Below, one piece after another: positions 1,916-62,951 of a stretch of DNA of 64,000 bases. The notes beneath the pieces were generated by a model, which was given only the letters and a program-made list of their open reading frames with translations, did not search any database and was not told the DNA's origin. The first letter of the stretch is position 1. Every line of letters starts with the position of its first letter. This DNA is from Dicyema japonicum (lineage: Eukaryota > Animalia > Dicyemida), in the NCBI GenBank assembly GCA_011109175.1, contig RDEW01000078.1:74823-138822 (forward strand), in the 5' to 3' direction. A program made the translations under genes and the position numbers.

Positions 1916-3460
1916 TAAGGTTCCTTCTTCGGTTTATGAGCACGCACCTTAATGTCCAGGTGTTTCGAGAAATGGTTTGAAGCTAATAGAATTCTTCAAA
2001 TCTTAGGAATAATATTATAGTTAATGGACAGATTGTATATATGCGTGAGGTAGCCAATTGCGTAGTGGCTTAGGTGTTTTAGGTGAATAGAAGATACTTT
2101 GTCAGGCCCGCACGCCCGTGAGCTCTTTAATCTGGTGATCACATCCAAGACTTGGTCATCTGTGAATAGTTCGTGTAAGGTTCCTTCTTCGGTTTATGGA
2201 CACGCACCTTAATGTCCAGGTGTTTCGAGAATGGTTTGAAGCTAATTCCAGCGTAATGTTTCATAAGGGTGTTAGGATGTAGGTGGCATAAGTGTTCAGG
2301 AGAAGACTTTCCGGTTCCGTCTGCATCATCCAGCTCCGACTTGACTTGTTTAAGAGTTTTCCAGAAATGTCGGGATGTACTTTTCCTGTCGAGGTGGTTA
2401 ACTAGATGCTGCCATCTCTTGTCCTTGTGTTCTTTTATGCTCTGACAGATCCTTTTATTCAGTTGTCTGAGGGCTGTCAAAGACTTCATGTCCAACAGAT
2501 GGCATCTCTTCAGCCGGTCTCTTTGTTTTATAAGACTTATTGTATAAGAGCTGAGGGTAGGAATAAACTTCTTGTATGACGATATAGGAATAAAAATATG
2601 GTCAGCTTTCTGAATGGCAGCGCTGATAATTTCTGCGGCCTCATCAATAGAGCGTATTGGGAGGATAATCTCCGGCCAAGAATTTATCCACAAGGTTACT
2701 GAAACCAGACCAGTCAACCTTCGTATAATCCTTGAATCTTTTTGATTCCGCCGGCCGTCTCCTGTATCGTCGAAGACCTCTCAATTTTAGAAGGATTGGA
2801 TTGTGGTCACTGGGAAGCCGTAAAAGACGTTCCAGGAAATGAGTCCAGCCAGAGAAGGTGAGCATAGTGTTAAGTCGGGGGATGTGCAGCTATCAGTCAT
2901 CCTTAATGGGGTCCTCGTATGTGAGTTAGGGTTGTTCAGTATAATCAGGTCAGGAAGATAATTTGCAATGAGTTCTCCTCGGTTATCAGAGGATTGGGAA
3001 GTGAGCCAAACTGGATGTCGTGCATTAAGATCCCCACATAACAGTAGATTTTTCAATGTTGAAATGCGTGATAAATCAGGGGTGTAAGATGACGGACACG
3101 ATCCTTGTGGAGGAATATATAATTAGCCAAATGGATCCAAAAGGACGGGAATAACTCGATTTTGACAGTAATCTGCTCCAAAGTCTTGTCGGAGCCAAGA
3201 AGCTCTGAGGTTCGTTGAGTTGTATCCATAAAAGGAATATCGTTCTTTATAATAGTAAGTAGTCCTCCTCCGCGTCCTCCCTGACGATCTTTACGGATCA
3301 CTGTGTATCCGGGAAAAGAGGGTGTTGGTATGGAGGGAGATAGCTTGGACTCCTGTATTAAAGCGAGGTCAGCCTCATTTTCGCGGAGGAGTGCCCGGAG
3401 TTCAAAGATTTTCTTCCTGATCCCATTCGTATTCAGTTGTATAATTGTAAAACCTCTCCA

Positions 3461-3517
3461 TGGACCAGGATTGGTTTCGACGTCCCCACATAAAAGAATC
3501 AAAAGTCTGGATAAATG
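3461..3517 (-). other. 2A/StopGo ribosome-skipping peptide HLSRLLILLCGDVETNPG|P
   Basis: Exact D(V/I)ExNPGP consensus preceded by a Leu-rich helix, directly upstream of the APE domain in ORF 3053..3658. Confidence 0.9.
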
Positions 3518-3581
3518 GGGACACCAGACAGGGTCGAAGACACAGGGATGAAAGGACCACCAGACGGTGGGGAGAAGCTGT

Positions 3582-3641
3582 TGGCTCTTTTCGTTCCATT
3601 TTGGAATGGGTGACACCGTTTCTGGTGAGCCACATGACACC
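3582..3641 (-). ncRNA. Candidate HDV-like ribozyme at the LINE 5' end
   Basis: GGUGUC AUG UGGCUC ACC AGAAAC GGU GUCACC CA UUCCA AAA UGGAA C GAAAA GAGCCA: P1 (one U.U mismatch), P2, P3 and P4 in HDV nested-pseudoknot order, with an unpaired C in J4/2. Confidence 0.6.
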
Positions 3642-3849
3642 ACGCTAACATTTCTCAAAAAACTTTGGATGGATGGCAGTTTTAAATATGATTTACTGGG
3701 GATAAATTAACTGATTATTTTTTCTAAAATTGATTTATTTTAATTTTTAGAACAGTGCTATTAAATATCAAAAAGTGAATTGCAATGTGGTAAAAAAATT
3801 TAATGTTGTGATATAATGTAATTTATTAACTTACAAATAATTAATACTT

Positions 3850-4874: not shown

Positions 4875-5799
4875 TAGAATTCTATTATAATAATGACTTG
4901 ACAATTATCTTATGTTAAGGCTCAACATTTTTGAAGTTGTAGTTTGTCAGATGTGGATGCGGTGATGTAGCTATGACAAAATAATCGTGTTAATCATTTC
5001 AAAATATGATATTTTTTTAATTTTCTTTAGTGTCCATTCACTAAGTGAGTGTTTATTCCTTATAATTATGAATTAGTCTTTCGCATAAATTATTGATGTT
5101 ATAACGGCTCATTACATTCTTTTTCAAATTCGTATTATTTATTGGAATTTTTAATAAATTTGTTTAAGTGGATGATGTATTTGTAAAAATTTGCAGTTTT
5201 TCAGACACTTTACAGAGTCCTTTGAAAAATTGCAACACTCACAAAAAAGGCTGTATGAAATTTGACCGGGTTAACCGATTTGACAAGGAGATGAAGATCA
5301 TTGTAGATCACATGAAATTCGAAACATAGTGTTTTAACATTTTCAAAATCCAAAACATGTGACTTTTCCACTGCTTGAATCAAAAAACAATTATTAATAT
5401 CTGAAATCATTCACTGATTTCAAAAAAATACTTATTGACATTACACATCGTTAGATGATCAAACCTAAAACTAAATATACAGGACTTGTGCATAATGTGC
5501 CATTCGTGGAATAGTTTGAATGCAGGTATTATGTTATGTGTTCTTTAGAGACAGCTTCGGAAAAATGTCGACACTGTGGTCTTGACCTATTTTGATCTGA
5601 GATTCACTATCTTTTTGTCTGTTCGTTGTAAGATAATTGAAATCGATCTCCCTAATTTGAAGGTTTTTTTAGTGAAATAGGGTTAGCACTTTAATTCATC
5701 AATATTTAAAAGAACCATAGAGATTGTGTTTTTTGGCCGAAATTAATTGAATTCTCAATGAATTGCCATAATGGTTCCAGCTCCCATAGTCGAGGAATC

Positions 5800-5945
5800 A
5801 GAGAGTTTCATGCCACCATAGCTCTGGGGATCATCCGAGAAAAGTGGATCACATGAAGCCATTCTAGAAGAACAGAGGAAGAGCAGGGACATAAAAAAGG
5901 AAGTTTTATCTTCAATCATATCGTCACATGGCACCACGCTAGCGT
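5800..5945 (-). mobile_element. Degenerate 5' part of the short non-autonomous element family
   Basis: Minus strand has AGCGTGGTGCCATGTGAC..GATTGAAG, then TGGCTTCATGTGATCCAC..CCCCAGAGC..GGCATGAAA, collinear with 32121-32274. Confidence 0.7.
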
Positions 5946-26706: not shown

Positions 26707-26916
26707 CCAGTGCCAGGCCGGCACGAAAAAGGATCATTTGCTCTCCCCCACTCCAATGGAGGGGTTTCCACAACTGAAACTATGGACGTCTTTTACCTTT
26801 TATGCTGATTCCGGATGGACTTTGTTTCTGTAGAAGTGGAAACTGGATACACTTAATTGGTTTGTTTACTTTAACTTCCTTCTCGGTGTATCCGGGGTTA
26901 ATAAATAATAAATAAA
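26707..26916 (+). mobile_element. 5'-truncated copy of the short non-autonomous element
   Basis: Near-identical to 32245-32445; starts inside the ribozyme-like fold (P4, CGAAAAA, P2') and ends in a (TAAA)n tail. Confidence 0.9.
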
Positions 26917-31620: not shown

Positions 31621-32120
31621 CTCTGCTCAAGCATCTTGGCTTTCAGTTGCTCCATATCTCTAATCTATGAAGATTCTGTTGAGAGTTGAATAATAATCTT
31701 CATCAAAAACTGACTGGAGCACAAGGAGGATGGATATACAGGGCGTACTAGATCCGTTGGTAGGGGATTCCCGGTCTACCAAAGTAAAAGGGTAAGGTTG
31801 CTTAGTCCCACCCTTGGTCGTCAAATTTAACATTCATAAAACGTTCGATAGTGGTTCGGAAGAGGGAGTCGATCGTATTGAGTTAATGCATTTTCAGGTA
31901 ATAAGGTTCCCCCAGAAAAACGTAGCTTAATTTTTGTGCTGACAAGATGTTTTTCAGCAGTGCTTAGCATAGAAAATTGTACACCCCATTTTTAGACATT
32001 TCGATGGTTTTTGAAAGAAAATATCATTTTTGGAAATTAAGATGGTAATAGTTAGACATTAATTTAATTTGTAATATTTTTATACGTCGATTTATTTGAA
32101 TATAATTTTTGAATCCTGTT

Positions 32121-32473
32121 AGAATATTCGCGTGGCGCCATGTGGTGCTGCATGGCTATTTGATTGAAGTTTTCTGCTCTTGTCTGTTCCTCCTCTCTCT
32201 TTTTATTAGATTGGCGTCATGTGATCCACCTGTCTAGGTGACGCCCAGTGCCAGGCCGGCACGAAAAAGGATCATTTGCTCTTCCCCACTCCACTGGAGG
32301 GGTTTCCACAACTGCATGTAATGGACGTCTTACCCTTTATGTGATTCCGGATGGACTCTGTTTCTGTAGAAGTGGAAACTGGATACACTTAATTAGTTGT
32401 TTACTTTAACTTCTTTCTCGGTGTATCCAGGGTTAATAAATTAAATCGTGATGAATCTTGTTAATAATAATAA
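32121..32473 (+). mobile_element. Full-length short non-autonomous retroelement (SINE-like, LINE-derived) with an 11-bp TSD
   Basis: TGAATCCTGTT at 32110-32120 and 32474-32484; (TAA)n tail; homologous to 62624-62951. Confidence 0.9.
32213..32274 (+). ncRNA. Candidate HDV-like ribozyme, second instance
   Basis: GGCGUC AUG UGAUCC ACC UGUCUA GGU GACGCC CAG UGCC AGGCC GGCA C GAAAAA GGAUCA; P1, P2, P3 and P4 all pair perfectly. Confidence 0.62.
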
Positions 32474-33749
32474 TGAATCCTGTTGCTTATAGAAAATTGT
32501 ACACCACTTAAATTTCTTAATTTACCTATAATTTTCGATAGTTTTTAGAAAAAATCACTTATCGGAAGTCTTAAAAGGTCAAATAATTGCACTGAACAAC
32601 CAGAAAATGTCTCAGACAAATTTCCAGAGACTGATGTTCTTTCTTCTACTGTCGGAAGTTTCATCAGTAGATAAAAAAAGACCGGAAGGATTTCTCGTAA
32701 ACCGGGTACAGGGCGTCTACCAAAGTTGAATGAATCGAAGATAAATGCAATATTTCCCGTGAAAATCCTTCGTTTTTGTCGCTAAAGTTATCTACGGTAC
32801 TCAAGAATTCCACTGGAACACAAGTTTCCAGGCATACAGTAATCCCAACTCTAAATAAAATATTCTGTCGAAAAACAATCAAAAAACCTTGTTAGTCTAA
32901 AAAAATACTGGAAAGACGAAAATCGTTACACTTTTTTACAAGTTTATGATGATGAATGGAAAACTTACATCTTTTCTGACGAATGTTCATTTGAACTGAG
33001 ACCGACAAAAAAGAACGCAATAGTTCATAAAAATGCGAAAGACTCTTTGAAGCCGGAATTCATCAAGCAAACTCATAAGTTTGGAAAAGGTTAGCTACTG
33101 AAATTTTAATTTTAGGTTCTGGGGGTGTTTCTCATATTACGGTGTAGGCCATTTGGTAGCCATTGAGGGTAATATGAATGCTGCAAGATACATAAGCATT
33201 CTTACAAATCATCTTCCTTCAGTCTGCTGAAAAAATGGGTCTAGGAGACTACGTTTTTCAGCAGGATAACCCACCAAGCCACACAGCGTGGGTCGTAAAA
33301 AAGTTTTTTAATGAAAATCAAATTAAACAAATCATGTGGTCCGCTTAGTCCCGTATTTAAACCCCATCGAGAATTGTGGACTCACGTAAAACGAGAAACG
33401 TACAAAAGCAATGACGGGACCATAAATGACTTGAAGATGGAGGTTTTAAGAGTTTGGGAGGAAATTCCACGAAGTTTAACAGAGAAACTCATTATTTCAA
33501 TGAAAAAACGCTTTTGGCACGTATATTCGGCACATGGTGGACACACAAATATTGAAAATTCAAATGTACGATTTTCATTGATCAGTAAAAATAAAAAATT
33601 TCTGATTGTTCCGTAATTAGGAATTTAATGATGATAAAAAAATTTTTGAAGCTATATAAGATAAAAGTCGAATTAATAAACAAATGAAACTATTTCCTTT
33701 AAAAAATTGAGAACTTAAGTGTACAATTTTCTATGCTAAGCACTGTATG

Positions 33750-37120: not shown

Positions 37121-37489
37121 GCTGTTTTTGAGTGTATTTGACCTCTTCATTACTTGGGAATCGATTCATATGCTGTACTCTATTTTGGTACATTTTTTTG
37201 ACTTCTTTTAATTTGGAGACTAATCCATCGGATTTATGCAAAAATGATATTTTTATCTCATTTAATGAATATGATTGAAATTCTCCCCTCCTTCTACTAG
37301 AGTGGGGTCCATCAGTCATAAGTGACTCCCAGTACCAGAATGCAACGAAAAAAGATCAATTACTCTCCCCCACCCTATTAGAGAAGTCCCCTCAACTAAA
37401 ATGACTTTGGTGACATTGGAATTCAGTGACAGTGAGAACTTGAGAGATTCAACAATTAACTCTTTCTCGAAGTATATGGGGGCAATAAA

Positions 37490-62623: not shown

Positions 62624-62951
62624 TATTTATTTATTAACCCCGGATAGACCAAGAAAGAAGTTAAAGTAAACAACTAATTAAGTGTATCCAGTTTCCACTT
62701 CTACAGAAACAGAGTCCATCCGGAATCAGCATAAAGGGTAAGACGTCCATTACATGCAGTTGTGGAAACCCCTCCAGTGGAGTGGGGAAGAGAAAATGAT
62801 CCTTTTTCATGCCGGCCTGGCACTGGGCGTCACCTGGACAGGTAGATCACATGACGCCACTCTAATAGGAAGAGAGAAGAGGAACAGACAAGCAAGCAGA
62901 AACTTCAATCAATTAACAACGCAGCACCACATGGCGCCACGCGGCAAAATA
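62624..62951 (-). mobile_element. Full-length 328-bp short non-autonomous retroelement with an 18-bp TSD
   Basis: TACAATTGACGGGTCCTT at 62606-62623 and 62952-62969; (TAAA)n tail. Confidence 0.95.
62797..62858 (-). ncRNA. Candidate HDV-like ribozyme, third instance (J4/2 C replaced by U)
   Basis: GGCGUC AUG UGAUCU ACC UGUCCA GGU GACGCC CAG UGCC AGGCC GGCA U GAAAAA GGAUCA. Confidence 0.55.

Follow-up and report, generated by a model that had tools for sequence, protein, structure and literature searches.

Introduction

HDV-like ribozymes are the accepted 5'-end trimming device of several LINE clades: by cutting immediately 5' of their P1 helix, they create the first base of R2, RTE, and L1Tc elements (PMC3185411, PMC5786205). 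In the ingi clade, this device is represented by L1TcRz/Pr77, an HDV-like fold of ~77 nt with which L1Tc and NARTc of Trypanosoma cruzi begin (PMC3185411, PMC3383444, PMC4035085, PMC3708506). Kojima lists six LINE clades with 5' ribozymes, Vingi not being included, and points out that a ribozyme inside a SINE should truncate that SINE (PMC5786205). The same work of 2018 described how the 5'-terminal ~70 nt of Vingi/RTE-type LINEs turn up again within SINE bodies and in bipartite non-autonomous LINEs, and Matetovici and colleagues (2016) reported mollusc LP-SINEs with LINE-derived heads of ~70 bp (PMC4758252). An Ingi-clade LINE with active 2A peptide is also known from molluscs (PMC3708506), and our literature search found no published report of HDV-type folds in mollusc 2A-LINEs.

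The present study concerns a 64,000-nucleotide stretch of Dicyema japonicum DNA (hereafter the window) and the 67.5 Mb genome to which it belongs. An initial annotation of this window had proposed that the 5' end of a LINE and several short elements share an atypical, possibly new subfamily of self-cleaving HDV ribozymes. We compared the copies of this fold in the window, across the genome, and with related LINEs of other organisms, and examined where the copies actually begin.

Results

The LINE and SINE copies of the window share an HDV-type pseudoknot

A segment-by-segment reading of the 3 full copies revealed a 60-70-base RNA knot with HDV-type shape in both the LINE copy and the SINE copies (Table 1). 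All 3 exhibit the common segment order and lengths that had been noted at the outset, and the strand order P1-P2-P3-P3'-P1'-P4-P2' is indeed that of the nested double pseudoknot of HDV. In the LINE, the 5' half of the fold consists of P1 GGUGUC, J1/2 AUG, P2 UGGCUC, P3 ACC, L3 AGAAAC, and P3' GGU, followed in the 3' half by P1' GUCACC, J1/4 CA, P4 UUCCA/AAA/UGGAA, J4/2 CGAAAA, and P2' GAGCCA, with a single U.U mismatch in P1 that the initial annotation had not mentioned. The fold of SINE A at 32213-32274 reads GGCGUC-AUG-UGAUCC-ACC-UGUCUA-GGU and then GACGCC-CAG-UGCC/AGGCC/GGCA-CGAAAAA-GGAUCA. Two incomplete copies had also been proposed, and both are genuine: the one at 26707 is a SINE that lacks its 5' part, and the one near 5850 is badly degraded. 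A covariance model built on P1 and P3 only, leaving P2 outside the model, recovered one additional copy in the window at 37292-37380. Folding energy by itself proves nothing about this module; nested energy folding yields either P1+P3+P4 or P2+P3+P4, and a folding z-score of -2.4 for SINE A is the sole noteworthy value among otherwise weak ones (-0.1 to -2.0).

About 12 nt past P2', a second hairpin is kept in every family with differing stem sequences (CACC/GGUG; CUCCA/UGGAG; CCAUCCAG/CUGGAUGG), and a conserved CAUUUGCUCU stretch lies ahead of it.

Table 1. Positions of the fold, its host elements, and accompanying features (window coordinates unless another locus is named)
Feature	Position	Strand	Remarks
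2A "StopGo" coding sequence GDVETNPGP	3461..3487	-	Then AP-endonuclease domain
Second hairpin, LINE copy	3557-3570	-	Counterparts in families B, C, E (L061, L063, L068)
LINE1-family HDV-topology fold	3582..3641	-	Covariance-model match 3560-3653, E 2e-16
10-nt leader ATGTTAGCGT adjoining P1	3642..3651	-	ATG at 3651-3649
Decayed module relative	5790..5870	-	P2' lost
5'-truncated SINE A copy	26707..26900	+	Begins inside fold at J1/4, not G1
Complete short non-autonomous SINE A	32121..32473	+	~330 bp + tail; target-site duplication
SINE head	32130..32155	+	Partial copy of LINE 5' end, 83 nt upstream of full fold
Leader TTAGATT + complete HDV-topology fold within SINE A	32203..32274	+	Helices all perfect
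Second hairpin, SINE A	32287-32301	+	Counterparts as above
SINE-type copy, P2-P3-L3 deleted or replaced	37292..37380	+	Covariance-model match
Fold of second SINE A copy	62797..62858	-	Conserved J4/2 C mutated to U
G(U)5-6C motif + hairpin of related LINEs	L083:1512-1560, L084:165-215, L085:300-345, L086:280-330, L087:350-400		

The host elements are LINEs encoding a 2A peptide and SINEs built from them

Four of the families, LINE1, B, C, and D, are LINEs: ~55-65 codons past the fold they encode a 2A peptide (GD[VI]E[TQ]NPGP), and an AP endonuclease (domain match Exo_endo_phos_2) comes directly after it. GDVETNPGP occupies residues 56-64 and so falls within 40-80 residues of the N-terminus, as in single-ORF elements of the Ingi/Vingi type (compare PMC3708506). 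The leader ATG next to P1 is the in-frame start of the 2A ORF in the commonest LINE1 form. In the window LINE copy (3053-3658, minus strand), a 1-nt deletion (CATCCCTG versus CATCCCCTG in most copies) puts this leader AUG out of frame with 2A; its endonuclease frame is interrupted, and the scanned pieces gave no recognisable RT domain. A long run of N lies directly past this decayed LINE (approximately L081:2316-4000, just before the window start) and masks its 3' end.

SINE A sits between two copies of a target-site duplication, TGAATCCTGTT (32110-32120 and 32474-32484). Its head of ~25 nt comprises the leader, a P1-like segment, ATG, and the start of P2, and a complete module including its leader then sits 83-88 nt further in. 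A BLAST comparison did not find the 3' tail of SINE A in the window LINE copy. Assembled contigs of one sample join 32097 to 32473 in 3 of 4 runs with 28 other letters between, which looks like an allele or paralogue without the SINE copy, and the family may have been mobile recently. In the 4 contig sets of the same sample, the only public runs that contain the SINE (library type unrecorded, none listed as RNA), contig depth is 16-20x higher from ~32200 on than over the SINE head; we gave this step no weight because head and core are about equally frequent in the assembly.

Covariation across families supports the pseudoknot on the sense RNA

Genome-wide, the anchor CATGTG-N4-ACC-N6-GGTG has 818 matches compared to 3 for a reversed control, and comparison of representatives distinguished at least 6 LINE/SINE families that differ in P2, L3, and P4. 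P3 is invariant among them, P1 and P2 covary, and each family has its own perfect P4 hairpin. P2 and P4 are UGGCUC/GAGCCA and UUCCA/UGGAA in LINE1, UGAUCC/GGAUCA and GUGCC/GGCAC in SINE A, and UGGUUC/GAACCA and GUGUA/UACAC in LINE family B, whose P1 is GGCGUC/GGCGCU. LINE family C displays the P4 helix AUAUAGU/ACUAUAU, LINE family D the P2 helix UGGUCC/GGACC, and family E is a short element.

In a covariance-model alignment of 98 copies (83 distinct), 92.4% of cells are paired under the full pseudoknotted structure and 10 of 15 pairs show changes on both sides, values matched by none of 500 shuffles; with partners displaced by 1-3 columns, only 24-67% of cells pair. These data bear out the claim that stem sequences of P2 and P4 change while pairing is kept. 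Three neighbouring P2 pairs show double changes (G-C/A-U, U-A/C-G, and C-G/U-A), and the numerous U.G and G.U wobbles (e.g., 21 U.G at column pair 17/69) fit the sense strand only, which places the structure on the sense RNA. A copy of family C in an octopus assembly (L082, GCA_006345805) keeps the fold with a further compensatory change in P4. The fold is therefore real and conserved and not a product of chance.

A lone diverged copy without P4 (L030:2066-2145, plus strand) has a P1 of AAUGUC/GGCAUU that is compensated at two pairs and begins with A instead of G.

The J4/2 junction is conserved and the usual loop signatures of HDV ribozymes are gone

HDV J4/2 begins with C75-G-A-A, and J4/2 of the module reads C-N-A-A-A-A(A) in all families with a leading C that is at least 90% conserved in the aligned rows, although pairing of this C with the G ahead of P4 is an alternative in SINE A and family D. 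An A-rich J4/2 is thus no peculiarity of the module as had been suggested, and neither is the 6-bp P1, a length that recurs in relatives (see below). The base at position -1 is U. P1 is closed by G-C in LINE1, SINE A, and families D and E and by G.U only in B and C (GC 55 and GU 7 in the 98-copy alignment, plus C-G in one variant), so that the G.U wobble at the cleavage site is not a general property of the module.

The usual HDV signatures in L3 and J1/4 are missing, as the initial annotation had correctly pointed out. L3 comprises 6 nt and reads AGAAAC, UGUCUA, UUUUGU, GUUUCU, AUCUCU, or UUUUAU depending on the family, with no position conserved among families and no U..C.CG-type signature. 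J1/4 is CA, CAG, GA, or CGG and has no consistent partner. A swapped P1.1 between the CA of J1/4 and a UG in L3 had been proposed in its place, but the LINE loop AGAAAC lacks any 2-nt complement to J1/4, and its presence in most other L3 loops is indistinguishable from chance. Free variation of L3 without a conserved P1.1 is how a loop free of catalytic constraint would look, judging from these alignments.

Related 2A-LINEs carry folds with more canonical cores

A word-indexed protein search with the LINE1 ORF returned only one weak match, but an exhaustive search with the same 464-residue query yielded 7022 relatives, the closest of which are 36-43% identical; N-terminal NPGP is present in 68 of the best 151 of these 7022. 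We scanned the 5' regions of 8 related 2A-LINEs at the DNA level with a simple HDV-topology descriptor and obtained one clear fold at the ORF start in each of 5 of them, while L083 and L085 fail the strict descriptor. In controls, this descriptor matched 1 of 320 shuffled trials and 18 of 190 AT-rich chunks of the window. P1 of the relatives is 6-7 bp long and different in sequence in every case, and J1/2 is AAC in 3 of 5. Their L3 loops (UAUACGU, UCUUCGC, UGCACGU, UUUACGC, and CCUCUCCG) all have CG at or beside the 3' end and resemble HDV L3 (UCCUCGC), and the P4 hairpin is followed by CAAAU, CAAAC, or CAAAG, close to the CGAAU of HDV J4/2. Since the layout 6-3-6-3-L3-3-6 and the C-N-A-A junction are common to these folds and the module studied here, descent from the HDV-like lineage of the relatives is the simplest reading, and it is likely from this comparison that the module derives from HDV-like ribozymes of 2A-LINEs.

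Rfam covariance models of the HDV type do not match the module at the gathering threshold or at E-values up to 10, in line with the prediction that standard descriptors would miss it. This silence means little because Rfam also missed every fold of the relatives with their better cores.

Distant 2A-LINE relatives have a further feature in common around 20 codons before 2A, namely a G(U)5-6C motif (peptide VF[SL]) with a long covarying hairpin behind it; this is a separate conserved RNA element (Table 1). A -1 frameshift at the GUUUUUUC motif of distant relatives was considered and rejected, as the frame does not fit.

Genomic copies begin upstream of the predicted cleavage site

If the fold generated element 5' ends as the ribozymes of R2, RTE, and L1Tc do, copies should begin at the first G of P1 (G1), and about half of any such copies should differ at both preceding bases. 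In genome-wide pattern counts, GT precedes GGCGTCATGTG-N4-ACC in 591 copies and both bases differ in 4. A search for LINE1-type P1 with both upstream bases differing gave 3 matches of which 0 are LINE1, and a pattern for C/E-type truncation recovered nothing except G1-to-A point mutants. All 30 LINE1 copies examined have a leader of 10-22 nt, (TTTGAAA)ATGTT(GTT)AGCGT, and no LINE1 copy starting at G1 was found. What remains before G1 in families B, C, and D is CGT at the least and usually a longer stretch, and every family retains between 3 and ~20 nt upstream of P1. The 5' end of the element therefore does not coincide with the predicted site. For SINE A, the head is present in 643 genomic copies (at most 2 mismatches), typically 87-88 nt before the CATGTG anchor of the fold, so the internal fold does not truncate the SINE.

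The position of start codons points in the same direction. LINE1 in its commonest form (13 of 26 copies) has no in-frame AUG for the 2A frame other than the leader ATG 10 nt before G1 (peptide MLAWCHVAHQK...), and a cut at G1 would therefore sever this start codon. Families C and D have their in-frame start for 2A at the J1/2 AUG, which is invariant, and the leader peptides differ among families. On these three counts, i.e., the 591 versus 4 copies, the leader start codon, and the retained SINE head, the initial idea of a working ribozyme that makes the 5' ends of the elements is not supported. The genomic copies instead suggest that efficient cleavage at the start of P1 is rare or lost.

Among 46 exact full-length LINE1 5' ends, 5 have an extra leader fragment (GTTAGC...) a few bases upstream (e.g., L035, L032, and L051). 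These fragments end at -2, -2, ~+1, ~+1, and +2 relative to the predicted cut, one of them is a plain 16-nt tandem duplication, and no longer fragment reaching through P1 was seen in the 46. They could have arisen by template jumping onto a short product of 5' cleavage or, equally, onto a single-stranded leader bounded by P1. An alternative P1 that uses the leader and places the cut at the element end was also considered, but no consistent pairing was found.

Discussion

We lean towards the view that the module is a derived, probably exapted HDV-type fold that is kept mainly as a cis-acting structural element and not as a 5' trimmer. It is the conserved 5' RNA of single-ORF 2A AP-endonuclease LINEs of the octopus type and of SINEs built from them, with a nested double pseudoknot most likely inherited from HDV-like ribozymes at the start of related 2A-LINEs. 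Helices, the J1/2 AUG, and the C-N-A-A-A-A junction are retained and the catalytic loop signature is gone, and the RNAs that give rise to new copies appear to be uncut at the start of P1. The start codon of a leader peptide, which 2A would later shed, lies within the fold or immediately before it. The fold may act in translation or RNP recognition, and it probably tags the RNA for recognition by the machinery of the element itself, which would be why the SINEs keep it as well; remaining self-cleavage, if any, would be weak. More tentatively, the module may be an exapted ribozyme without any cleavage that serves as a 5' identity module of the LINE RNA, framing the start codon of a throw-away leader and being recognised by the machinery.

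The strongest competitor is the original proposal in its full form, a self-cleaving ribozyme that is active and belongs to a new HDV subfamily. Such a ribozyme would cut just before the first G of P1 and release the element RNA from upstream transcript, with a non-canonical P1.1/L3 core in place of the usual one. The parts of this proposal that stand are the HDV topology, the covariation, and the absence from Rfam; the working ribozyme that makes 5' ends is the part that is not supported. Activity would be in line with the covarying topology, the conserved C and A's of J4/2, the U at -1, the G.U closing pair in families B and C, and the location at LINE 5' ends as in L1Tc, R2, and RTE (PMC3185411, PMC5786205), and the cores of the relatives look canonical. 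The extra leader fragments near the predicted cut in 5 of 46 LINE1 copies fit as well. The weak core does not speak against activity as such, because L1TcRz works with a single-pair P1.1 (PMC3185411), and cut RNAs might make poor templates, in which case genomic copies would not reveal cleavage; this weighs against our preferred reading. Nevertheless, we consider an active ribozyme unlikely: next to no copies begin at G1, the cut would remove the leader AUG that 13 of 26 LINE1 copies depend on, and the SINEs retain ~90 nt upstream of an internal fold that should truncate them (PMC5786205). Furthermore, no L3 position or P1.1 is conserved, the window copies have a G-C closing pair, and P1 of the LINE contains a U.U mismatch.

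A pseudoknot of separate origin that has converged on the HDV shape, e.g., as a translation or protein-binding element near the start codon, is a good deal less probable still. All LINE families have an AUG inside the fold or immediately ahead of it, L3 is unconstrained, and no Rfam HDV family matches, all of which such convergence would explain, but the nested double pseudoknot is a rare topology, and segment lengths, the C-N-A-A junction, and the position ahead of the pre-2A leader match those of relatives with HDV-like L3 motifs. We finally regard it as very improbable that only a DNA-level internal promoter or coding constraint is at work and that pairing reflects chance or copy relatedness, a view to which the separate recurrence of the first ~25 nt as SINE head, the proposed promoter function of LINE-derived ~70-bp mollusc SINE heads (PMC4758252), and the promoter activity of Pr77 (PMC3383444) lend some credit, but which is at odds with the double compensatory changes in P1 and three adjacent P2 pairs, a perfect P4 particular to each family, wobbles that fit the sense strand only, helices kept in non-coding SINEs, and leader peptides that differ between families.

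A fold with the architecture of the LINE-trimming ribozymes is thus under clear selection in LINEs and hundreds of SINE copies whose own ends indicate that the transmitted RNA was untrimmed at the fold. If confirmed, exaptation of the fold would show a ribozyme scaffold put to a different use in nature and would provide a structural account of the ~70-nt pieces of LINE origin that SINEs carry in their heads and bodies (Kojima 2018; Matetovici 2016). An exapted module of this kind would explain why 5' ends of RTE, Ingi, Vingi, and R2 elements survive in bipartite elements and SINE bodies, and HDV-type folds would be extended to mollusc 2A-LINEs.

In comparison with known systems, SINE A and family E share the build of the elements described by Kojima and Matetovici, with a LINE 5' piece mid-body or at the head; those studies recorded sequence similarity only and proposed a promoter or recombination origin (PMC5786205, PMC4758252), whereas a covarying RNA pseudoknot is seen here. 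Like HDV, CPEB3, and the R2/RTE ribozymes, the module is a P1-P2-P3-P1'-P4-P2' nested double pseudoknot with a 3-bp P3, a variable P4, and a J4/2 of C followed by purines. Unlike them, the window copies lack the G.U closing pair and a GG/CC P1.1, have a 6-nt L3 without the C-G signature and a P1 of 5-6 bp, and match no Rfam family. With L1TcRz/Pr77, the module has in common its place at the 5' end of a single-ORF LINE with N-terminal 2A, and its sharing with short non-autonomous derivatives; the P1.1 of L1TcRz is weak, with activity on one pair (PMC3185411), and SIDER2 elements also carry two signatures as SINE A does. The module differs in its unconstrained L3 and in having its start codon inside or ahead of the fold, and, whereas L1TcRz cuts exactly at element position +1 in vitro, the families described here retain 3 to ~20 nt before P1.
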